From IMG/VR virus record IMGVR_UViG_3300048591_000147, positions 1 through 64,000 of that record: DNA of 64,000 nt, one strand, 5' to 3'. The notes beneath the pieces are model-generated. The model was not told the DNA's origin, made no database searches, and saw only the letters and a list, made by a program, of their open reading frames with translations. The position numbers were made by a program, and so were the translations under genes. The first letter of the stretch is position 1; the number at the start of each line of letters is the position of its first letter. Positions 18,183 to 49,767 of the stretch are shown piece by piece.

Positions 18183-19016
18183 ATGAACATATATTACACA
18201 TACATTTACTTAGATCCAAGAATAACTGGCATATGGGAAACAACGTTTGGAGTATTTAACTATGAACCATTCTACGTTGGTAAAGGAAAAGGGCAGCGAT
18301 ATTTAGTCCACCTTAAAGGTTGGGCATATAAGTATAAAAACCCACATTTATATAATAGAATAAGTAATATCAAGTCTGATGGGTTTGAGCCAATTGTAAT
18401 GATATTAAAAAACAACATATTACAAGAGGACGCATTAGCTATTGAGGCTAAATTAATAAATGAATTGGGCACTAGAAAGAATATATCACAAATAAAACTA
18501 GGACCGTTAGTAAATCTAAAATTGGACGGGAAGGTTCAGCGATTTTCAGATGAAACCAAACAAAAAATTAGTGAATCCGCACGAACAAGAAAGAGGAAAT
18601 CACATTCAGATGAAACCAAACAAAAAATGAGACTCGCGTCTGCGAATTTCACCGAAGAACAAAGAAAACAAAAATCAGAAAGAATAAGTAAGAAAATAAA
18701 AGGTAAAAAATTGTCAGAACAGCAATGTGAGCGCTTATCCCTATTACATAAAGGTAAAAAATTATCTGATGAACAAAAAGAGAAATTACGGATAACGTCT
18801 ACTGGCCGAAAACATTCTCCCGAATCGTTATTAAAGATGTCATTATGGCAAATTAAAAAATGGAAAATAGAAAATATAAATACTGGGATTTTTATAACGG
18901 ATAATCTAGCAGATTGGTGTAAATCTAACAATATAAATTATCATACACTCTATAATACATTAAAATCTCAAAAGTTTCACAAATTACATCGGTTGGTAGA
19001 AAAAGTGGCTGATTAG
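18183..19016 (+). CDS. GIY-YIG-family homing endonuclease with NUMOD3-like repeats
   Basis: YYTYIYLDPR..PFYVGKG..R; repeated HS.ETK.K / LS.EQK.K motifs. Confidence 0.85.
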   Translation: MNIYYTYIYLDPRITGIWETTFGVFNYEPFYVGKGKGQRYLVHLKGWAYKYKNPHLYNRISNIKSDGFEPIVMILKNNILQEDALAIEAKLINELGTRKNISQIKLGPLVNLKLDGKVQRFSDETKQKISESARTRKRKSHSDETKQKMRLASANFTEEQRKQKSERISKKIKGKKLSEQQCERLSLLHKGKKLSDEQKEKLRITSTGRKHSPESLLKMSLWQIKKWKIENINTGIFITDNLADWCKSNNINYHTLYNTLKSQKFHKLHRLVEKVAD

Positions 19017-19042: not shown

Positions 19043-19954
19043 TCAGAAGGGTGGTAGTTTTTTCAATAATTCTATATAATTGTCTTTTTGAGGGTCATTA
19101 TTTTTAACCCCATCAATCCACATAGTTACCATTTCTGGAGTTGGTGGCTCAGGTTCTGGTAATTTTTCTACAGGTTCCGCAAATGGATTATATGGACAGT
19201 AGAATGCACCAGCATCTGTTTCTATTTGACATTTATACATAATTGGACCATCAATATTTTTTCTAGGTTCTTTTCTACTGAACTTCTGTTCTAGTGCCAT
19301 AATCAGATCTGTCATGTTGGCTGCGTATAGGCCCGCCGCGTTGAGCGTGTTAATTTCGACGATCTTAATACCGTCTGGCGTTTCGCAAACATCTATCACG
19401 TATGCCTCATGTGGTTGCCAGTCTCTACGATAAGAACAGCACAGGTTGTAAACGAAATTGTCAAATCGTTTATCAACGTCAGATGAGTAATGCACCGTGC
19501 CTCCACGTTTATACATGGATTTCGTTACAATTTTTCTATCTACTATCCAGTACCTATACTCCGCGTAGATTTCTTTAACAGGGCATACTTGGATTAATGT
19601 ATCACCGTTCATAGAAGAACCATAGTCATCACCCATCGTGAGAATACTATGTTGCCAATCTGTAAGCTCTTGATCCGTAAAGACTTTTCCAGCAAATACC
19701 TTGGAATCTTCAATTGGACGAAGGAATGCCGTTCCTGTTACAATCTTGGCATCAGCAAATCTCGACACAACAGCATCAGCATTGAGCATATATGAGCCCC
19801 AATGCTTCATCTGCTCATTGAAATTGACTGGCTCTAGATCGAACACACCGGGATACCAACCTTTCTTTCTTGCAATATGACGCATGGAATAAGATCCCAT
19901 GCATATTACATTAAGTAATAAATAAGAAAAAAGATTCAGTCGAATGACAATCAT
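19043..19954 (-). CDS. ATP-grasp protein (DUF4343/R2K-like), possibly N-terminally truncated
   Basis: F.RP..DSK.FAG, EYRYWIVD, YVIDV..T..G.KIVEIN..AAG.YAA. Confidence 0.7.
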   Translation of the reverse strand: MIVIRLNLFSYLLLNVICMGSYSMRHIARKKGWYPGVFDLEPVNFNEQMKHWGSYMLNADAVVSRFADAKIVTGTAFLRPIEDSKVFAGKVFTDQELTDWQHSILTMGDDYGSSMNGDTLIQVCPVKEIYAEYRYWIVDRKIVTKSMYKRGGTVHYSSDVDKRFDNFVYNLCCSYRRDWQPHEAYVIDVCETPDGIKIVEINTLNAAGLYAANMTDLIMALEQKFSRKEPRKNIDGPIMYKCQIETDAGAFYCPYNPFAEPVEKLPEPEPPTPEMVTMWIDGVKNNDPQKDNYIELLKKLPPF

Positions 19955-20008
19955 GGGTTATCTCCTTATACGATAAAACCCCCATAACCGTCGATAAACT
20001 TACTGAAT
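19934..20008 (+). ncRNA. Y-RNA-like element A (minimal)
   Basis: ATTCAGT-CGAA...CTT-ACTGAAT terminal helix with bulged C; inner ATGGGTT/AAccCCCAT stem; TTATC. Confidence 0.65.
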
Positions 20009-20736
20009 TATATGTGTCTAGGTGCCAGAATGGTATTGGGTTGCGCTGCAAACGCAAATTGCGGGGGTTCGATTCCCTCCCTAGACTCCAAATCTTTAAC
20101 CTTGGCAATCCAGTTTTTAACTTTTTGCCTTTTCATACCCAAAAGGTTGGCGACTTTGGTCACCCAACCATATTTTGTAAAATCTATACCAGATTCGTTT
20201 AGTAATGTTATACGTTCTTGCTGTGATTTAAACCACTCGTTTAAGTGAGTCGCCAACCATTCTTTTCTTTCTTTCTTCTGCGGTTTGATTAATGCCGTTT
20301 TTTTATTTTTAGAACAGTAGTTGGTAGTCTGAGTATGACAATTTGGACACAGCAATCTAAGATTTTCAAATCTGTTATCATCATTTAGACCGTTGATATG
20401 ATCTAATTGTAAAGTTAATGGTAAATTATTATGCGTTCCGGTATTTGCGCATAATGCACACGAGTAATTTGTTAATTCAATAAACCTAGCTTTGACCCTT
20501 TTTCTAGGGACTTCGCAACCTGTAGTAAATAATTCATCATCTGTGTAGTATCTCTTTAAGGCGGTCATATCTCTGCATTTAAAATGTGAAATATCTAAAT
20601 TATATTGTTTTATATATTTGGATAAGGTTCTATAACCTCCACCAGACGTTGAGTTGCAACCCATTTTTGCAATTGCTTCTCTTTTACTTAAACTATTTTG
20701 AATTATTGATTTAATTTCTTCTGCTTTTGTTTCCAT
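20008..20736 (-). CDS. HNH homing endonuclease
   Basis: CALC..LQLDHINGLNDDNRFENLRLLCPNCH; own TATAAATA box in a hairpin at 20742..20787 (minus strand). Confidence 0.9.
   Translation of the reverse strand: METKAEEIKSIIQNSLSKREAIAKMGCNSTSGGGYRTLSKYIKQYNLDISHFKCRDMTALKRYYTDDELFTTGCEVPRKRVKARFIELTNYSCALCANTGTHNNLPLTLQLDHINGLNDDNRFENLRLLCPNCHTQTTNYCSKNKKTALIKPQKKERKEWLATHLNEWFKSQQERITLLNESGIDFTKYGWVTKVANLLGMKRQKVKNWIAKVKDLESREGIEPPQFAFAAQPNTILAPRHI
20016..20090 (+). tRNA. tRNA-Cys(GCA)
   Basis: Full cloverleaf: GTCTAGG/CCTAGAC, TTGCG-CTGCAAA-CGCAA, U73, encoded CCA. Confidence 0.92.
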
Positions 20737-23157: not shown

Positions 23158-23778
23158 ATGTATTATACGATATATCTAGTAACTAATACTATTAATGGTA
23201 ATGTTTACATAGGTAAACATCAAACGAATGATTTAAACGATGGCTATATGGGATCTGGTAAGATCCTTAAAAATGCCATTAAAAAATATGGACTTTGTAG
23301 TTTTCAAAAAACAATTTTACACATATTTGAAAACGAACAAGAGATGAATAAAAAAGAAGCAGAATTAGTAAATGAAGAGTTTATAGTACGAAAGGATACT
23401 TATAATATCTGTGTCGGTGGTTGTGGTGGATTTGGTTATATAAATAAAAATTTACCGAATGGTATGCTTGGTAAAAAGCAAACCGATTTCCAGAAACAAA
23501 GAGTGTCAGAGTGGCATGAGAAAAACAAACATCTTGTTGATAAAAACAAACACTCTGAAATGATTAAAAATGGATTGAAAAAAATGCTCAAACCTTCCGA
23601 TGGCTTTACAGGAAGGACACATACAGAAGATACCAAAAATAAAATGTGCAAGCCTAAAAATATTGGTGAAAGTAATTCACAGTTTGGTAGTATGTGGATA
23701 ACAGATGGTATAAATAGTATTAAAATAAAGAAGACAGATCTTATTCCAGAAGGATGGTATAAAGGTCGTAAAACGTGA
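23158..23778 (+). CDS. GIY-YIG homing endonuclease (Seg-like)
   Basis: TIYLVTNTING.VYIGKH..Y.GSG..LK.AIKKYG; upstream CATAAATA within hairpin 23111..23152. Confidence 0.9.
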   Translation: MYYTIYLVTNTINGNVYIGKHQTNDLNDGYMGSGKILKNAIKKYGLCSFQKTILHIFENEQEMNKKEAELVNEEFIVRKDTYNICVGGCGGFGYINKNLPNGMLGKKQTDFQKQRVSEWHEKNKHLVDKNKHSEMIKNGLKKMLKPSDGFTGRTHTEDTKNKMCKPKNIGESNSQFGSMWITDGINSIKIKKTDLIPEGWYKGRKT

Positions 23779-31335: not shown

Positions 31336-31599
31336 ATGATGGGGAAGATTCGACTAGATTTGAAGATTACACAAAATTTAAACTGCGTGGTAATTGGCAG
31401 ATCAAAGAGGCACAACTCGCACGAGCATCTATTGATGACTGAACCATGCCCATATTGTTCTCGGGCAATTCTAATCGGGGACGGTTGGAGTATACATGCT
31501 CGCATCATAAAGTGCCCGCATTGTAGGAAAAAGATTTCATTACTGTGGGATGAAGATGGCTCTGGAGAAGGTTGGTTCTATTTTGAAAAGGAAGAGTAA
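31336..31599 (+). CDS. Zn-ribbon protein
   Basis: CPYC...CPHC. Confidence 0.5.
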   Translation: MMGKIRLDLKITQNLNCVVIGRSKRHNSHEHLLMTEPCPYCSRAILIGDGWSIHARIIKCPHCRKKISLLWDEDGSGEGWFYFEKEE

Positions 31600-32093
31600 T
31601 GAGATTAAATGAAGTGCATGATGAAGATGCCAAGGTCATATGCGGGTTTCCCGGAGTAGGAAAGACAACACTATATAAAGAATTGAAAGATACTAAAGCT
31701 AAAGTATTGGATTCTGATAGCAGTCAGTTCGACAAAAAAGAATTCCCCGACAATTATATAAAGCATATAAAAGAGTCTACCAAAAAGGGATACACTGTGT
31801 TAGCATCATCTCACGATGTTGTGAGAGATGCGTTAATACAGAACAAAATACCGTTTATTCTGGTTTACCCTTCGGCAGAATTGAAAGAAGAATACCTGAA
31901 ACGTTACGCTGATCGTGGAAGTCCTACCCCATTCATTACCTTATTAGAAAAGAATTGGGATAAATGGATTGGAGAGTGTGATTCAATTAAAAACGATTTA
32001 GTTAAAAAGATAAAGTTAAAAGCTGGCGAGTATATTTCACTGGACAAGATCAACGAAAAAGGTGATAATGATGGACGATCAAGCAAAAATTAA
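31599..32093 (+). CDS. P-loop nucleoside/nucleotide kinase-like protein
   Basis: VICGFPGVGKTT, LDSDSS, YADRG. Confidence 0.7.
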   Translation: MRLNEVHDEDAKVICGFPGVGKTTLYKELKDTKAKVLDSDSSQFDKKEFPDNYIKHIKESTKKGYTVLASSHDVVRDALIQNKIPFILVYPSAELKEEYLKRYADRGSPTPFITLLEKNWDKWIGECDSIKNDLVKKIKLKAGEYISLDKINEKGDNDGRSSKN

Positions 32094-32627: not shown

Positions 32628-33021
32628 AACAATTATGAATATAACAACAAAAAACTTACACGAATACACAGAGCAGCAAATTTTTGATTATGTGGTAGAT
32701 AAACTATTTACTCAAAATAGAGCTAGTATTAATGAAGATGATCATTGCCAATATCGTGGTGAGAACGGTATTAAATGTGCTGCCGGTCATTTAATAGCAG
32801 ATGAGGATTATGATCGCTCGTTTGAAGGTGCTATCTGGAGTGAATTGGTTGATAATGGTGATGTACCAAAGGAACATTTCAATTTGATTGGAAAATTACA
32901 ACAGATGCATGATTCTGTTGCATTTAACAATAGTGGGTGGTTCGCTAGCATGTTGGATTACGCTGCTGACGAATTGGCTTCAGAACTACATCTGAAATAT
33001 ACCAGAAAAAATTTCAGTTGA
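32581..33021 (+). CDS. KCAAGHLI-family hypothetical protein 4 (likely start MNITT)
   Basis: Same motifs. Confidence 0.65.
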   Translation: MCQKMYRRSDSIAHGKTIMNITTKNLHEYTEQQIFDYVVDKLFTQNRASINEDDHCQYRGENGIKCAAGHLIADEDYDRSFEGAIWSELVDNGDVPKEHFNLIGKLQQMHDSVAFNNSGWFASMLDYAADELASELHLKYTRKNFS

Positions 33022-33057
33022 CAGCAGCACTAAATAGATGTAAGATACACAAACTAA

Positions 33058-33396: not shown

Positions 33397-33437
33397 AGTT
33401 TTCAAAACGTATAAATACATAGAAATGAGAATTTTCT

Positions 33438-34313
33438 ATGAAAGTTTATACCGTATATAAAACCACAAACATCGTAAATAACAAATATTATATCGGCGTA
33501 CATAAGACTGCCAATCCAAATGATGATTATCTTGGTTCTGGCACCGTCTTCAAGTTAGCAATCAAAAAATACGGAAAACAAAACTTCAAAAAAGAAGTTT
33601 TGTTTGTATTTGATGATTTAAAAGACGCATATGAAAAAGAATATGAATTAGTTAATGAAGCATTTGTAAAATGTGAAGATAATTATAACTTGCACATTGG
33701 TGGGTCTGGTGGATTAGCTTTTGAATACATCAACAATGATGTTGAATTTAGAAAAGCAAAGAATAGAAAAGCCCAAGCCGCCATGATAGCTACTGGATAT
33801 TATAAAACACCAGAACATAAAGCTAAAATGTCTGAGTTAAGGAAACAAGAATATAAAGAAGGTAAAAGAGTAGTTAATCCAGAATTTCCAAATGCTTTTA
33901 AAGGAAAGAAACATTCTGAAGAAACTTTAAGAAAAATGAGTGAGTCATCGAAAGGTGTAACTGCGGGGGAGAAAAATTCGCAGTTTGGCACTAGATGGTG
34001 TAATGATGGCGTGAATAATATCAAAATATCCAAGGGTGGGGAAATTCCAGAAGGCTACCACTTGGGTAAAGTTAAACTGGCTAAAGAGCAGCGCAAGCCG
34101 CGTATAGTAAAGTCACAAAAGAAACATGATAATTATGATTTTGGTGCACCAAGAAGAAAAGCTACAATAGAAGATATTAAAATTGCATTATTAAAACATG
34201 ATAAAAACATAAACGATGCGATGGTTAGTTTAGGATATAAAGCGAATAGTTCAGGCAACTCTAGATATAGATTTGAAAAGGTGTTAAAAGCACTTGACAT
34301 CAGCACTAAATAG
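33438..34313 (+). CDS. GIY-YIG homing endonuclease (Seg-like, NUMOD3)
   Basis: TVYKTTN..NNKYYIGVH..YLGSG; KHSEET..KMS; TATAAATA at 33410. Confidence 0.9.
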   Translation: MKVYTVYKTTNIVNNKYYIGVHKTANPNDDYLGSGTVFKLAIKKYGKQNFKKEVLFVFDDLKDAYEKEYELVNEAFVKCEDNYNLHIGGSGGLAFEYINNDVEFRKAKNRKAQAAMIATGYYKTPEHKAKMSELRKQEYKEGKRVVNPEFPNAFKGKKHSEETLRKMSESSKGVTAGEKNSQFGTRWCNDGVNNIKISKGGEIPEGYHLGKVKLAKEQRKPRIVKSQKKHDNYDFGAPRRKATIEDIKIALLKHDKNINDAMVSLGYKANSSGNSRYRFEKVLKALDISTK

Positions 34314-34336
34314 AAGTATCATAGCAACATATCAAT

Positions 34337-34423
34337 TGGATCGTCACCCAGTGGACGAAGGTAGCGGGCTTTTAACCCGATTGCGAAAGCACAACGTGGG
34401 TTCGAATCCCACCGATCCAACCA
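34337..34423 (+). tRNA. tRNA with Lys(TTT) anticodon and long variable arm
   Basis: TGGATCG/CGATCCA, GCGGG-CTTTTAA-CCCGA, 15-nt V arm TTGCGAAAGCACAAC, CCA. Confidence 0.85.
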
Positions 34424-34450
34424 TTTTATCCCTCCAAAAATAAAGCCGCC

Positions 34451-35361
34451 ATGCGCATAGTCATCGAAATTCCTGACGACCAAGTTCCACCATCCTTTAT
34501 TACGCCACTATACCCTTCCGGTTATGCCGAGGATAATTTACACGATCTATTAATAAATAATTCCGCATTACACATATTTGATAATAAGATGTTGATGACG
34601 ATATCACAGGATGTCGCAGACGATCATAAATTAGCATATAAAGATGCATGTGATGCTCATTTAGCATTCCTAAAACTCTTACAACAAAACATGAGAATAG
34701 AGTCAGGCGACTCTAAAGAGAAAGTTCTGATTGACGGCTTGACTGAGGTAGCGAAGGATTGGTATGATGGTTGTCCTAAGTCGATGAACTTTGTTTCAAG
34801 AACCCTTAAACTCCTTAAAACATATATGGGAAACCCAAAATGAGTGCTGCATTACAAGTTGGAAAAGCCATTGATATTCTTTCAAAATATGAAGAAATCT
34901 CTATTGCTGCTGATCATGATGAAATTTATTTAGGTGTTGGGTATGAGAATACCGTTTCATTGGAAGATGAAACCGCTTTGAAAGAACTCGGTTTTCGAGA
35001 GAATAGTCACAATTATTGGCGCAAGTACATTTGACAGTGGCCGAATGGTCAGGTAAGATACATCCACACTAAATAGGATACACCAATGTTTTTCTTATCA
35101 GCGTTTTTGATATTCTTGACTGTAGTGTTTTTTATAGCGACTCTGAACTCGTACAAATACGATCTTGTCTATATGATATTAACAGTCGTCTTGCTAATAT
35201 CAAGTCTGATGGCTCTAGACATCGCTATGACAGAGCGGTCGTGCACAGTAACGTGGAATATGTCAAATACACCATCACAGTATACAATTCTAACGGGTTG
35301 TATGATTAAAGTAGATGGTAAATGGATTCCTGCTAGAAATTACAGGGCATTCACAGATTAA
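34451..35361 (+). CDS. Hypothetical ORFs 34451..34843, 34840..35034, 35086..35361
   Basis: ORFs lying between the two tRNA-Lys copies. Confidence 0.5.
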
Positions 35362-35366
35362 TTTAA

Positions 35367-35479
35367 TGGATCGTCACCCAGTGGACGAAGGTAGCGGGCT
35401 CTTAAAATACTTTTACGAGAGTATTTTGAAACCCGATTGCGAAAGCACAACGTGGGTTCGAATCCCACCGATCCAACCA
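35367..35479 (+). tRNA. Second copy of the long-V-arm tRNA-Lys, anticodon CTT, with a 26-nt hairpin insertion in the anticodon loop
   Basis: Identical to 34337..34423 outside the anticodon loop; insert 35403..35428. Confidence 0.85.
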
Positions 35480-35494
35480 ACTTACGAGTGATTT

Positions 35495-37950
35495 ATGAAG
35501 ATCGCACTAGTTCTCATGTTATACTTAGGCACTCAAAATCCTAAAATAGAAGTCATCCACGGGTTTAAACGCATGGATGTGTGTAATACGGCAGGCGAAA
35601 GAATCTTGGCCAAAAGAAATCCAGCACTAAATGATTTCGCCTGTATTATCATCGACAATAACAACCTTGTAGAACAGGAATAAGACATGTTAATCTTGGG
35701 TTTAATTTGTATCATCGTTGGTGGTTATTTATTTCTATATAACGTTAATAACGAGTATAATAGCAGCATTCTCCCAGAGGTAATGGGCATAATTATGGTA
35801 TTTCTTGGAATGCTTTTTACCACTATTGGTGCTGATAAACAGCGCTGTTATGATAAATGGGAAGAGAGTAATATCGAATTTAAATACCAAGGTATGTGTA
35901 AAGTGAAAGTTAATGGTGTCTGGATGCCTGACAAACACTATCACGTATATGATAACAACCAGATTGAGGCAAAGTAATGAAAGTCATCATGGCATGGATT
36001 TTTTTATTTATTGTAGGTTTTGGACTCTATTACAAAGATCTAGGGTATTTCCAAGAAACTAACAGGGCTTGTATCGTCCTAGACAAGTTAGAATCGACTC
36101 ACATTGGAAAGTACACCGCAACCAATGAGTTCATTTTAGTATTAAGACTACCAGACAATACCGTGACAGACCTTGAGGTTCGCCCTCACGTCTGGTCCCA
36201 GACTAAGGAAGGTGACACATTATACTTCTTATTGTCAGATTTCGAACTACACCGCGATGGGTGGAAGTTCTTCCCCCATTTTTTCGGAATATGTTTGATG
36301 CTGATAAGTGGTATTATGACCTTGTCTCACATCGCTGTAAATAGTTATAGGAAGTTCTCCTGAAATGGCGACAGCACAAAACATGGTCGGATATAAACTT
36401 TTTAGAAAGCGTGTTGACGGCACCTACGGTCCTCTTTTTATCAATAAAAAATTGCAGATGGTGAAAGATGTTGTATATCATGCAGAAGAGCACAGAACAA
36501 AGGGATACGCTTATCGTCCCGGCTGGCATATATGTAGAACTCCTGACGCGCCACACCTATCGACAAAAGGTAGAGTGTGGTGTATGGTAGAGTTTGAGCA
36601 TAAGCAGACACTGAATAGACCAGCACATCAAGGTGGAATTTGGTATCTCGGCAACACGATTAAAATTATAAAGGAAGTATGATTCGTGAAATACAATATT
36701 AAAGAAATGGTAAAGGATAACAAGAGAGTTAAATTCTGTTATTACAGAAGCGGTGAACTCTTTTATAAAACTGAATGCGGCTTCATGTTTCCAGTCCCAG
36801 TAAGTGATACCGGCAACGGAGTCTTTCTGGATGAAGACAAAGCAATGTTCTTTATGCGATATATCCGCAAACAGGTCCAAGCTATTAAAGATGACAACAA
36901 CGAGTTTGAATCGATCAAAGATGCTACACCATTGACACAAGATGAAAGCTTAAAGGTTTTGAGGTCTGCTGGCGTCATCAATGATAAAAACGAATTGACC
37001 GAAACATTCGGTGGTGTTGGAATGGTCACGGAATAAACTGGAGAAATAAGATGAGTAGAAATATTTGGATTGTTATGTCTGTCGTGATGTTAGTGTGTGG
37101 TATAATTCAAGCTCTTAGTTATTTCACCGGAAACTCCCTTGCGCTTGTCCAAGCATTTGCATCCTTTACATTTTCTTATGCGATGAATATTCAAGTTCAA
37201 GTATATGATCTGCGTGAAAAACTCGCAAAATTAAGTTTGTAAATATTTGGAGATATAATAATCATGTTTAGAGGCGTAGACGGTATAGGTTATAGCAACG
37301 AAAAGAAGAAATGGTTTATTTACAACACTTCTGTTGACTATGACGCAATTGAAAGAAATGAAAATTACTTTCCGAAACTCCGCAGAGAGATGGAATATAC
37401 CGTATATTTCGATAAGTTTGAAGACGCATCCATTGAGCTTGGTATTATTCAAGAAAAATATAAGGGTAGCCTATAAAGATGCGTAATTTGGTTATCTCTC
37501 CAAAGGAACTATCCATCTTAGGTGTGATTGCAATGAAGCCTAAAGTTGATCCCGATATTATAGAAAAAGAGATAGGACAAATCGAGTTAGGCACTGATGC
37601 CACTATAGTTGCTAATATAATGATTCAACAAATGCGTAAAGTTCCAGTAGCCGCTGATAGAAAATATATAAACCTTGCAAATGCTATTAGGGCTTGGGCC
37701 GAAGCAATGCGTAACATGAAAAATAGGAGAGAATATTATGGGTGATATGTTAGTAATACATGCGTACAATCCAGAAAAACGGGCTGGAGAGGTTCTAATC
37801 GACGATTTTGAAGTAGCGTCTACCGATTACGATGCAACAGGGTGGGCGGGATTAGCTTTGCTCGAAGAATTGGCCAATAATCTTGCAACCTATTTCGGTG
37901 TGACAGTCACTGATCGCGACACGGGTGGATGTGAAGAAGAAAGTGAATAG
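35495..37950 (+). CDS. Run of small hypothetical/membrane ORFs (35495, 35687, 35977, 36365, 36686, 37051, 37264, 37479, 37738)
   Basis: Tightly packed + strand ORFs with RBS. Confidence 0.5.
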
Positions 37951-38009: not shown

Positions 38010-38525
38010 ATGTCACTCATTTATACTCTATTCATCATATTCGTCATCGGTTGTCTGATCTATTATTTCTTTTCTCTCAGAAATCAAAAGAGTGATTTGG
38101 ACAAGTATAAAATTGCATTGGATGAATATGACAGGCATCTAGAAGAATGCTCAAGAGCTATGGCGCAGCAATACAAGCATACGGTGACAACAATCACCAC
38201 GACTGCGGAACAACCTGCTAATACGCCTGCGAAGAAGGCTAAAAAAGCACCTACGAAGGTGTATGCGGCTAAAAGTGCTCCATACTCGTATGATCGTTCA
38301 AAATCTAATGCAAATAGCAACAACAACGCTGACAATAATATTATTCAATTCCCATATGTGCATCATGCGGTAGTTGATGACGATTCGTGCAAGACTTCAA
38401 ATTCCTCTAGACAATCCTGTGAGTCTCCTGTAGAATCATATTCTGGTTCCAGTTACTCAAGCGATAGTTCAAGTTCATCGTCTTGCGATTCTGGTGGTTC
38501 CTCATGTGGTGGCGGTGGAGATTGA
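38010..38525 (+). CDS. Membrane-anchored protein with Ser/Gly/Cys low-complexity tail
   Basis: N-terminal TM; ends SSSSSSCDSGGSSCGGGGD. Confidence 0.6.
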   Translation: MSLIYTLFIIFVIGCLIYYFFSLRNQKSDLDKYKIALDEYDRHLEECSRAMAQQYKHTVTTITTTAEQPANTPAKKAKKAPTKVYAAKSAPYSYDRSKSNANSNNNADNNIIQFPYVHHAVVDDDSCKTSNSSRQSCESPVESYSGSSYSSDSSSSSSCDSGGSSCGGGGD

Positions 38526-39180
38526 AATGTTTGACTTCGACCCCAGTGTTCGTCATTTCTTAAGCATAAGAAAGCGTCTTGGAGATGGTGGACCAGAATT
38601 TATCGCTTACCGTTATGGTAGCAGAGTTTATGGGACTGAATCATATGACTCAGACTATGATTATATCGTAGTCTCTGAAAAAGCAGAGGATGGTAAAGAA
38701 GAATATTTCTACGCTCAGCAGGATCAACTGAACGTTCATTATCATACGCCAGCACATTGGCAACAGATGGTGGACGATCATAAAATTTTCGCTTTGGAGA
38801 GTATCTTTCAATGTGAGCAATCACACCAATATAGAAAGAATTTTAAACTTGATCTAACCAAACTGCGCAAAGAGATTTCTGAAAAGTCAAATCATAGTTG
38901 GGTGAAGGCTAAGAAAAAATTACTGGTCGAACATGACTATAAGATCGGCTTGAAAAGCTTCTTCCATTCCTTTAGAATCATCATGTTCGGCTGTCAAATT
39001 GCAAGGGACGGTCACATTTATGATTATAAGATCGGGCATACCATATGGGAGCCTATCAAAGCCCTTATGCTTGAAATTAACGCGGATAACGTAGAAGAAA
39101 TCTACGCGAAATTGGTTATAGATTATAAGTGGTATCACAATAACCTCATGACAGAATTTAGGAAGTTGGCACCAAAATGA
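38494..39180 (+). CDS. Pol-beta-superfamily nucleotidyltransferase (likely start 38527)
   Basis: YGSRVYGTESYDSDYDYIVV (GS..DxD); helical C-terminus KS.FH.FRI. Confidence 0.8.
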   Translation: MVPHVVAVEIEMFDFDPSVRHFLSIRKRLGDGGPEFIAYRYGSRVYGTESYDSDYDYIVVSEKAEDGKEEYFYAQQDQLNVHYHTPAHWQQMVDDHKIFALESIFQCEQSHQYRKNFKLDLTKLRKEISEKSNHSWVKAKKKLLVEHDYKIGLKSFFHSFRIIMFGCQIARDGHIYDYKIGHTIWEPIKALMLEINADNVEEIYAKLVIDYKWYHNNLMTEFRKLAPK

Positions 39181-47536: not shown

Positions 47537-48187
47537 ATGTTTTATACGGTTTATAAAATAACAAACATAAAAAATAATATGGTTTATGTAGGTGTCCATA
47601 AAACACTTGATTTAAATGATAATTATTTTGGGTCTGGACAGTATCTACGTGCCGCTATCAAAAAGTATGGAATATCAATCTTCACAAAGAAGATATTAGC
47701 AGTATTTGATACTCCCGAAGAAATGTTTAACATGGAGCGAAAAATAGTAACTGAGGAATTTGTAAAATCTAAAAATACGTATAACCTTGGAATAGGTGGG
47801 TCTGGTGGTAATAGAGTAGGTAAAGATCATCATACCCATTCGCTCTCCAATATGACAAGCATGTCAGAAAAAGCAAAGGCATCTTGGAATGATGTGACTT
47901 CAAGGGGGGAGAGGGTGAAAAAGTTAGCTACCAGAAATAGTAAGCTACATAAAATTGGCATACTTAAAAGACCTGATTGGACAGGCAGAAAACATAAAGA
48001 AAGTACAAAGCAGAAAATTTCTGAGAAAAATTCTAAAAATAGAACTGGTGAAGCAAACCATAGATTTGGTAAATGCTGGATAACAGATGGTACGATAAAT
48101 CGATCCGTATGTAAGGAAGCGGAATTACCAGATGGTTGGAGATATGGTAGAGTAATGAAAACGAACATAGTTGACAACACTAAATAA
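47537..48187 (+). CDS. GIY-YIG homing endonuclease (Seg-like)
   Basis: TVYKITNIKNNMVYVGVH..YFGSG; KHKESTK.KIS; CATAAATA upstream. Confidence 0.9.
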   Translation: MFYTVYKITNIKNNMVYVGVHKTLDLNDNYFGSGQYLRAAIKKYGISIFTKKILAVFDTPEEMFNMERKIVTEEFVKSKNTYNLGIGGSGGNRVGKDHHTHSLSNMTSMSEKAKASWNDVTSRGERVKKLATRNSKLHKIGILKRPDWTGRKHKESTKQKISEKNSKNRTGEANHRFGKCWITDGTINRSVCKEAELPDGWRYGRVMKTNIVDNTK

Positions 48188-48433: not shown

Positions 48434-48512
48434 GAGCGGTTGGCGGAACGGTAGACGCAGATGGCCTAAAAAACTGTCTCCTTAGTGGTTCGAATCCACT
48501 ACAGGCTCACCA
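48434..48512 (+). pseudogene. Degenerate Leu-like tRNA
   Basis: Leu-type D arm GCG-GAACGGTAGA-CGC, T arm and CCA, but 9-nt anticodon loop CCTAAAAAA, mismatched acceptor, no long V arm. Confidence 0.5.
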
Positions 48513-48531: not shown

Positions 48532-48653
48532 TGGCATGTAGCTTAGAGGCAGAGCGAGTGACTGTGGAAGGAAACGTCAAGGCGTTGATCAGTTCGAATC
48601 TGATAACTTCAAAAGTAATCACTAGGTCGTAGGTTCGATCCCTACCTTGCCAG
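48532..48653 (+). tRNA. tRNA (Asn-like body) interrupted by a 50-nt structured insert in the anticodon loop
   Basis: AGTGA-CTGT[48566..48615]TAA-TCACT; G73; removing 50 nt gives a standard 72-nt tRNA-Asn(GTT). Confidence 0.8.
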
Positions 48654-48667
48654 CATAAAATTTAAAT

Positions 48668-48806
48668 GTCTCTTTGGCCGAGTGGACTATGGCAACAGGC
48701 TGTGGGTGTAAGAGTAAAGGCTCTGATCAGTTCGAATCTGAAATCACCGAAAGTAACCTGTCAGATGAAAATCTAATCACTGGTTCGAATCCAGTAGGGG
48801 ACTCCA
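48668..48806 (+). tRNA. Long-V-arm tRNA interrupted by a homologous 50-nt insert
   Basis: ACAGG-CTGT[48704..48753]TAA-CCTGT; 17-nt V arm; U73; CCA. Confidence 0.78.
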
Positions 48807-48861: not shown

Positions 48862-49767
48862 ATGAAAAATAACATAACAAACGATATTGAGCTTTTCAAG
48901 CAGATAGTTCTTAAAAGTAAGAGCATAAGACAGGTTTTAAAATTTTTTAACATCTCATCAAATTCTGCTAGATATTTTACAGCCTTCCATGATCTCGTTA
49001 AATTATATGACATTGATATAAATCATTTCATTGCTTATAAAAGACTAATTGTACCAACAGACTTCGATTGGGGGCGGGTTAACTCTATAAAAGATGCCGC
49101 AGAACAATTAAAATTGATCGAACCGGAAGCCAAGCTATGTTCAACGTGGTATGGAAAAATTAAACAATACATTAACAATAATAATGTTGATGTGTCACAC
49201 TTCAACTACAATGGCAGATATAGAAATTTAAATAGAAGATATAATCATGATGATATCTTCATAGAAGACTCCATGGTATCTAAACAAACATTAAAGGCAA
49301 GATATTCAGCGCTGCGTTCAGACAATATCAGATGTGATATGAGCGATTGCATCATATCCGATAATTGGTTAGGTCGTCAGATCACATTACATCTGGACCA
49401 TATTGATGGTAATAATAGAAATAATTGTTTAACAAATTTACGCTTCTTGTGCCCGAACTGTCACAGCCAAACGTCCACATATGCTGGAAGAAACTTAAAG
49501 TTACACTCTAAAAAGCCAGAATATAAAAGAAAATACGTACCAAAACCAAAAAAGCAAAAAACTGAAAATATTATACCGCGTGAGAAGTACAAAAGGCCAG
49601 AACAGTTCACCGTAGATAAAGATGCGTTACAATCATTGATCATGACTAATTCCATGGTGGAGGTTGCAAAACTCTTCAAAGTGTCGGATAATGCGATTAG
49701 AAAGAGATGCAAGAAATTGGGCATTGATTTGTCGCTTTCTAAAAATAAAAGGACTTCAAAAATATGA
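48862..49767 (+). CDS. HNH homing endonuclease with C-terminal HTH
   Basis: LHLDHIDGNNRNNCLTNLRFLCPNCH; SMVEVAKLFKVSDNAIRKRC; late box within 11-bp hairpin 48812..48862. Confidence 0.9.
   Translation: MKNNITNDIELFKQIVLKSKSIRQVLKFFNISSNSARYFTAFHDLVKLYDIDINHFIAYKRLIVPTDFDWGRVNSIKDAAEQLKLIEPEAKLCSTWYGKIKQYINNNNVDVSHFNYNGRYRNLNRRYNHDDIFIEDSMVSKQTLKARYSALRSDNIRCDMSDCIISDNWLGRQITLHLDHIDGNNRNNCLTNLRFLCPNCHSQTSTYAGRNLKLHSKKPEYKRKYVPKPKKQKTENIIPREKYKRPEQFTVDKDALQSLIMTNSMVEVAKLFKVSDNAIRKRCKKLGIDLSLSKNKRTSKI

Follow-up and report, generated by a model that had tools for sequence, protein, structure and literature searches.

Short tRNA introns removed by proteins are regarded as a hallmark of archaea and eukaryotes (EndA/TSEN plus RtcB/Trl1), whereas bacteria and phages are thought to carry only self-splicing group I introns in their tRNA genes. 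In 2019, "enigmatic" introns were reported in the tRNA genes of Lak megaphages (PMC6784885), and our literature searches found no paper that explains how these are removed. Here, we describe a jumbo phage that carries two copies of an unusual long-armed tRNA-Lys gene, one of which is interrupted in its anticodon loop by a 26-nt hairpin that is conserved in related phages and of a kind that bacteria and their viruses have no known machinery to remove. The sequence analyzed (hereafter the window) is a 64,000-nt stretch of IMGVR_UViG_3300048591_000147, a 315-kb phage contig with a near-identical sister contig in sample 3300048590. Megablast of 4 kb and tblastn of a 654-aa protein gave no match among GenBank phages, so no isolate is close.

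The original prediction described a duplicated tRNA-Lys in which the second copy carries a hairpin insert, and this observation was correct in every detail. Copy 1 (34337-34423) and copy 2 (35367-35479), both on the plus strand as are the hairpin, promoters, GIY-YIG gene, and two small ORFs described below, are identical at 86 of 87 shared positions. The single difference is T>C at 35401, the wobble base, which changes TTT to CTT, and the flanks of the two copies are unrelated. ARAGORN called copy 1 as tRNA-Lys(ttt) of 87 nt but missed the 113-nt copy 2. By contrast, the Rfam tRNA model (RF00005, gathering threshold 29 bits) detected both, scoring copy 1 at 49.8 bits and copy 2 at 35.6 bits with a 28-nt insertion in the anticodon loop, while relatives scored 39.6-42.7 bits. 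The hairpin reads T35403 / AAAATACTTT / TACG / AGAGTATTTT / G35428. With the additional pair U35402-A35429, it forms a 12-bp helix between 35402-35413, which includes anticodon bases U35 and U36, and 35418-35429, closed by the tetraloop UACG at 35414-35417. The anticodon arm folds at -15.2 kcal/mol compared to -6.0 +/- 2.2 for shuffled sequences (z = -4.2, with 0 of 200 shuffles as good), and the cloverleaf is kept in the MFE fold.

The tRNA itself is unusual, a feature that the original prediction missed and that is the more widespread oddity. It has a class-II-like long variable arm (UGC-GAAA-GCA), atypical for Lys, together with a 3-bp D stem, U1-A72, A73, and an encoded CCA. The E. coli LysRS identity set comprises a UUU or CUU anticodon with U35 and U36 and the discriminator A73, and both genes satisfy it once the insert is removed (loop CUUUUAA or CUCUUAA), although charging was not assayed. 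Similar long-armed tRNAs with Lys or Asn anticodons are annotated in several phages, including phiCbK-like Caulobacter phages (Lys CTT), Ruegeria, Roseobacter, and Rhodobacter phages (Lys), and phiKZ-like Pseudomonas phages (Asn), and they also occur in a few IMG/VR contigs. Among one genome for each of 185,579 bacterial and archaeal species, the Lys form was found only once, on a 230-kb MAG contig whose 8-tRNA cluster looks like a jumbo phage. A literature search found no description of this family, and none of these other members has an insert.

Conservation of the insert in relatives had been set out beforehand as a point on which the interpretation would stand or fall, and the insert passed, being conserved in many relatives. 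DNA pattern scans for insert-bearing members of the long-armed Lys family and for the hairpin itself found only the window's own contig in IMG/VR, and a looser pattern gave 96 hits, of which none of the other 95 had a T-arm. Scans of JGI metagenome contigs and GTDB genomes for insert-bearing members also found nothing (the metagenome collection evidently lacks this phage), and exact look-ups of the two proteins flanking copy 2 returned nothing. However, homologs of the two small ORFs next to the tRNAs, a 130-aa ORF between the copies (34451-34843) and a 91-aa ORF ending 5 nt before copy 2 (35086-35361), served as synteny anchors and led to contigs of related phages in Logan, ENA, JGI, and NCBI assemblies (designated by L numbers below). 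Sixteen assemblies carry the same interrupted gene at the same site, giving seven distinct gene sequences, and a wastewater sequencing run (X4) adds an eighth variant and makes 17 assemblies in all. The flanking proteins of these phages are only 53-81% identical to those of the window.

Within this set, the insert varied less than the tRNA that carries it. Among six distinct interrupted genes in one alignment, only 3 of 26 insert positions varied, compared to 23 of 87 body positions, and L108, L109, and L110 have 26/26 identical inserts although their bodies are only 78-89% identical. The three changes all preserve the structure: A>G at 35407 (A-U to G-U), G>A at 35428 (U-G to U-A), and the second loop base. 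Changes among relatives are concentrated in the loop, which is UACG, UUCG, or UGCG, but in the most distant relative, L126, it is the pentaloop UUAUG, which led us to drop a strict UNCG requirement. In an eight-sequence alignment, every cell paired, and eight cloverleaf pairs, spread over all helices, changed on both sides compared to 0-1 when partners were slid. No hairpin pair was ever lost, with 100% of cells paired in the six insert-bearing sequences. Body covariation could, however, predate a recent horizontal spread of the insert. The two G-U pairs (35412-35419 and 35403-35428) would be A-C mismatches on the other strand, indicating that the helix is selected in the sense RNA and not as a DNA palindrome. 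Moreover, the hairpin does not behave as a dispersed REP- or MITE-like element, as it occurs once in the window at up to 3 mismatches, only in this contig in IMG/VR, and always at the same tRNA site in relatives.

Comparison of the two loci revealed insert-less alleles at both. At the first, between tRNA-Gly and the 130-aa ORF, L116-L124 have the interrupted Lys(UUU) gene 10 nt after tRNA-Gly with no endonuclease gene between them, and in L116-L119 it lies inside a tRNA cluster. L110 has a GIY-YIG homing endonuclease gene (L110:3324-4193) between tRNA-Gly and the still-interrupted tRNA, 24 nt upstream of the latter. The window has the homologous free-standing gene (33438-34313, matching PHROG 314 and Pfam GIY-YIG/NUMOD3; 85% aa identity) followed by the uninterrupted copy 1. 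L105 and L115 have no tRNA there, and a wastewater allele (the 33404>34442 joint) lacks both the endonuclease and the tRNA. This allele initially suggested that copy 1 is cargo of the endonuclease cassette, a reading we rejected because L116-L119 have the tRNA without the endonuclease. At the second locus, following the 91-aa ORF, the window has the interrupted CUU gene, and L108, L109, and L126 have an interrupted UUU gene, followed in L109 and L126 by an uninterrupted long-armed CUU gene, while L110, L112, L113, and L105 have ordinary 76-nt Lys tRNAs. In addition, a 232-nt contig from wastewater run X2 spans 35289-35503 with exactly 26 bases left out at 35404 and with C retained at 35401, and it therefore cannot be a chimera with copy 1. 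This contig has 43 nt at one end that do not lie on the window, and it could be a DNA allele, a spliced precursor, or a slippage or reverse-transcriptase skip across a hairpin flanked by AA repeats. All uninterrupted alleles read CTYTTAA, placing the insert at 35404-35429 or, because of the flanking A runs, the indistinguishable registers 35405-35430 and 35406-35431 (36/37 to 38/39). Its removal gives the canonical loop CUCUUAA, that is, Lys(CUU) here, and Lys(UUU) in most relatives.

Taken together, the original interpretation was partly supported. The insert is a discrete intervening sequence in an otherwise intact tRNA-Lys gene, as proposed, and the arithmetic of the three proposed excision registers was correct. 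By contrast, the suggested amber suppressor was not supported, and neither was the idea of copy 1 as a built-in control, because copy 1 is the exception at its locus, where its orthologs in L110 and L116-L124 carry the insert. The proposal that the insert armors the tRNA against PrrC, RloC, or PARIS was not tested here, although it is reasonable given that tRNA-Lys is an established target of anticodon nucleases and phage tRNAs are known counter-measures (PMC10264068, PMC11455837). In the same window, the two other interrupted tRNAs, with 50-nt inserts at 48532-48803, are most simply read as Asn. These inserts sit at position 35/36 and look different, so there is no single shared rule.

Our best explanation, held with only moderate confidence, is that the 26 bases are a conserved hairpin-shaped mini-intron removed by proteins. 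In this view, the gene is transcribed as part of the phage's tRNA region, the insert folds back on U35 and U36 and extends the anticodon arm by a 12-bp A/U-rich helix, and the hairpin has to be cut out at its base and the two halves rejoined. The sequences themselves show the clean insertion, the non-random hairpin, its conservation, the selection on the sense RNA, and the insert-less alleles, whereas the steps of removal are our inference from geometry and the properties of known enzymes. We propose a double-strand-specific, RNase III-type staggered cut, after U36 on the 5' strand, two base pairs into the helix, and after the last paired base on the 3' strand, at the helix end. This would release a 26-nt hairpin with a 2-nt 3' overhang, a geometry given only by register 35404-35429, and would leave a 3'-OH on the 5' half and a 5'-phosphate on the 3' half for sealing by an Rnl1/Rnl2-type RNA ligase, the class that T4 uses to reseal tRNA-Lys anticodon loops. 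However, ten base pairs between the proposed cut and the loop is at or below the usual minimum for bacterial RNase III, and no enzymatic cleavage was assayed. RNase P plus RNase Z release of the helix as a tRNA minihelix was also considered, but the predicted piece lengths (25, 27, or 29 nt) do not match 26.

Removal from the RNA is supported only indirectly. The interrupted gene sits inside tRNA clusters and behind sigma-70-like promoters, namely, TTGACA-17-TATCAT at 34294-34322 (11 of 12 matches), ending 15 nt before copy 1, and TTGACA-17-TAAGAT at 35031-35059, upstream of the 91-aa ORF and copy 2, although both are consensus matches only. It also keeps every decoding-relevant loop base, has no broken cloverleaf pair in any interrupted copy, and is maintained in many lineages although precise loss is evidently easy. 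There is no RNA evidence, as the only runs holding this phage are wastewater libraries labeled RNA-Seq that were rated as probably DNA and are kept only as contigs. Among about 85 ORFs of the window scanned with Pfam or PHROGs, we found no RNA ligase, RtcB, Pnkp, RNase III, or EndA-like gene. This leaves undecided whether the phage or its host supplies a splicing endonuclease and ligase, because the other 250 kb of the contig and the host genome were not examined. Two possible enzymes were considered and set aside: a P-loop kinase at 31599-32093 looks like a nucleotide kinase rather than a polynucleotide kinase, and a Pol-beta-type nucleotidyltransferase at 38494-39180 has only marginal hits. 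The hairpin was not picked up by a terminator scan, no ribozyme family in Rfam matched and the insert is too short for a self-cleaving ribozyme, and AAG makes up 33-37% of Lys codons with no early/late difference, giving no hint of timing. Conservation of the stem at the sequence level suggests recognition by a specific protein, whether a processing enzyme, a homing endonuclease acting on DNA, or a defense nuclease.

Why the hairpin is kept is a separate matter, and sequestering the Lys anticodon in the precursor, for timing or for protection from anticodon nucleases, is possible but untested. A bolder and more tentative reading is that a clade of jumbo phages uses a protein-only cut-and-rejoin pathway inside a bacterial cell to remove a sequence-conserved hairpin from tRNA-Lys, with a double-strand-specific nuclease plus an Rnl-type ligase as one candidate route. 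The hairpin would then keep the anticodon hidden from anticodon nucleases until the tRNA matures, and this would be the first tractable non-group-I tRNA splicing system in the bacterial world.

Of the alternatives, the one that survives best, although we consider it unlikely, is that the interrupted RNA is never spliced and is itself the functional product. Such a tRNA-Lys look-alike, its anticodon locked in a helix, could act as a decoy or inhibitor of tRNA-Lys-directed nucleases (PrrC, RloC, PARIS AriB), in line with the proposed armor, or as a binding site for a phage protein. The greater conservation of the stem than of the tRNA body would be expected for a sequence-specific partner, and L110 keeps the interrupted gene alongside ordinary class-I Lys(UUU) and Lys(CUU) genes, so it is not needed there simply as a Lys decoder. 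Yet, the loop bases that matter only for decoding (C32, U33, N34, A37, and A38) are all retained, precise deletion always restores a perfect 7-nt loop, the anticodon differs meaningfully between genes, with the window's two copies complementing each other, and no defense or anti-defense gene was identified nearby.

Less likely still, the insert may act mainly on DNA by interrupting the recognition site of a homing endonuclease that cuts uninterrupted tRNA-Lys genes of competing phages, spreading with that endonuclease by collaborative homing, as is reported for a free-standing endonuclease and an endonuclease-less intron in cyanophage psbA. The region is full of free-standing GIY-YIG and HNH genes, the GIY-YIG gene of L110 lies next to the insert-bearing tRNA, presence/absence polymorphism is seen at two loci, and near-identical inserts occur in diverged tRNA bodies within an identical anticodon arm, which looks like a co-conversion tract. 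However, RNA-level removal would still be needed, the same endonuclease sits next to the uninterrupted copy 1 in the window, L116-L124 carry the insert without it, and the G-U pairs argue for selection on the RNA.

It is improbable that the insert is a disabling insertion and copy 2 a hitch-hiking pseudogene. In its favor, no splicing machinery was found among the ORFs scanned, ARAGORN does not call the gene, the window, L109, L110, and L126 each also have an uninterrupted Lys tRNA, and precise loss by slippage between the flanking AA repeats seems to have happened more than once, but conservation in 17 assemblies with diverged flanking proteins, the low variability of the insert, and the intact pairing of every interrupted copy all speak against it. 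Finally, although excision of exactly 35403-35428 would yield loop CUCUAAA with anticodon CUA, and would leave a U at the end of the 5' exon and a G at the end of the insert as for the 50-nt inserts, we reject this Lys-charged amber suppressor as very unlikely because every natural insert-less allele is CTYTTAA, the same register in nearly all relatives would give UUA, an ochre suppressor, although TAA ends 65 of 127 ORFs, and TAG is an ordinary, rarer stop (12 of 127) with no sign of recoding; the mature RNA was not observed.

This case is the smallest and cleanest example we could find, offering a 26-nt stem-loop with exact boundaries, natural interrupted and uninterrupted alleles, a set of sequence variants that define what is constrained, and a target tRNA that is central to phage-defense conflicts. 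It therefore provides an easy substrate for finding the enzymes involved, and it allows a test of whether anticodon-loop inserts are counter-defense devices, selfish elements, or regulators. Automated annotation misses or mislabels these genes, as ARAGORN returns no call in standard mode and "tRNA-Stop" or "tRNA-Gln" in intron mode; the tRNA-Stop(tta) calls assume a 24-nt intron and a shifted loop and are an algorithmic artifact.

Compared with known systems, the insert resembles archaeal and eukaryotic protein-spliced tRNA introns in being short, lying in the anticodon loop with 37/38 as one of three equivalent registers, pairing with the anticodon, and being unable to self-splice. However, it lacks their bulge-helix-bulge motif (two 3-nt bulges separated by a 4-bp helix), instead showing, here and in all relatives, a 3x2 internal loop followed by an uninterrupted 12-bp helix. 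Its sequence is also unusually conserved, and its host is bacterial, judging from the sigma-70-like promoters and a T4-like tail gene. Group I introns likewise interrupt the anticodon loop of bacterial-type tRNA genes and are often associated with homing endonucleases, but they are 200 nt or longer with a ribozyme core (P3-P9), and no intron hit was obtained in the window at E<=5. The insert must therefore be cut and rejoined by proteins, or else not be removed at all. The T4 pathway of PrrC cleavage, Pnkp healing, and Rnl1 sealing also rejoins two halves of tRNA-Lys within the anticodon loop, in a T4-like phage setting, but repairs damage and removes no sequence. Bacterial RNase III processing hairpins, such as the phage T7 R1.1 site, are A/U-rich stem-loops in phage transcripts as well, and one excision register here matches their 2-nt 3' overhang, although we know of no precedent for such cutting followed by religation. 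The closest precedent is the set of Lak megaphage introns, which also lie in the anticodon loop of oversized phage tRNA genes, are identical across cohorts, are present or absent among close variants, had their excision point deduced from uninterrupted alleles, and have no known splicing mechanism. The Lak intron sequences were not compared with this insert. The lineage differs, this being a T4-like-tail jumbo phage from wastewater rather than a Prevotella megaphage, as does the isotype (Lys), and what is added here to that known but unexplained group is a real, conserved, and well-delimited insert that consists of a minimal 26-nt stem-loop in a class-II-shaped tRNA.

Beyond the interrupted tRNA-Lys gene, two more interrupted tRNA genes were found in the window, at 48532-48653 and 48668-48803, scoring 50.2 and 36.1 bits against the Rfam tRNA model. 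Both read CUGU[50 nt, GG...AAAG]UAA in the anticodon loop, and the two 50-nt inserts are homologous to one another and contain a T-arm-like hairpin, GATCAGTTCGAATCTGA. The body of the first gene has U1-A72 and G73 like E. coli tRNA-Asn, so a GUU reading puts the insert at position 35/36. The body of the second gene has a long variable arm. In a pattern scan of IMG/VR, this arrangement was found only in this contig. A weak tRNA-like sequence (Rfam 16.7 bits) lies between tRNA-Trp and the first of these genes, at 48439-48502, and has good D and T arms but a 9-nt loop and a poor anticodon stem.

At least six free-standing homing endonuclease genes of the GIY-YIG or HNH type (18183-19016, 20008-20736, 23158-23778, 33438-34313, 47537-48187, and 48862-49767) lie next to tRNA genes within 30 kb. 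The GIY-YIG gene at 33438-34313 contains a perfect 12-bp A/T-rich palindrome with a 6-nt loop (33576-33605), which was picked up as terminator-like on both strands. One contig in wastewater run X1 joins 33404 to 34442 with 12 other letters (CTCCATAACCAA) in between, replacing 33405-34441, and this allele lacks both the GIY-YIG gene and the uninterrupted tRNA-Lys copy. The same 12 letters precede the homologue of the 130-aa ORF in L105, a contig from a related phage.

We also found three near-consensus promoter-like sites of the form TTGACA-17-TAnnAT (33018-33046, 34294-34322, and 35031-35059), each lying just upstream of a tRNA or tRNA-containing unit. This suggests that the tRNA region undergoes early transcription driven by host sigma-70. 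Three enzymes are encoded close to the tRNA genes: an R2K-clade ATP-grasp protein (19043-19954, minus strand), a small phage "nucleotide kinase"-like P-loop protein (31599-32093, plus strand), and a Pol-beta-type nucleotidyltransferase (38494-39180, plus strand). Although the last of these had a marginal hit to RlaP, which is associated with RNA repair, none of the three could be tied to tRNA processing.

Among the relatives carrying an interrupted tRNA-Lys gene, the acceptor end differed between contigs. The genes in L108 (825-939) and L109 (396-508) have G1-C72 and do not encode CCA, with A73 instead followed by TAA or CAA, whereas the versions in the window, L110, L116, L117, and L126 do encode ACCA. 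In intron mode, ARAGORN labeled the interrupted genes of L108, L110, and L116-L119 as "tRNA-Stop(tta) i(40,24)" and that of the window (35367-35479) as "tRNA-Gln(ttg) i(35,24)." These calls are an artefact of forcing a 24-nt intron, and automated annotation could wrongly report suppressor tRNAs in these phages.

The uninterrupted tRNA-Lys at 34337-34423 belongs to a phage-wide family of class-II-shaped tRNAs with a long variable arm (GCGAAAGC), which was also seen in the sequences designated L001 (1490-1577), L002 (295-378), L003 (290-378), L005-L007, and L107 (6559-6643). Its members have Lys (UUU/CUU) or Asn (GUU) anticodons, with one exception that has CAU. A literature search returned no description of this family, which is essentially absent from cellular genomes. 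Lys and Asn are both charged by class IIb synthetases, and both are targets of anticodon nucleases.
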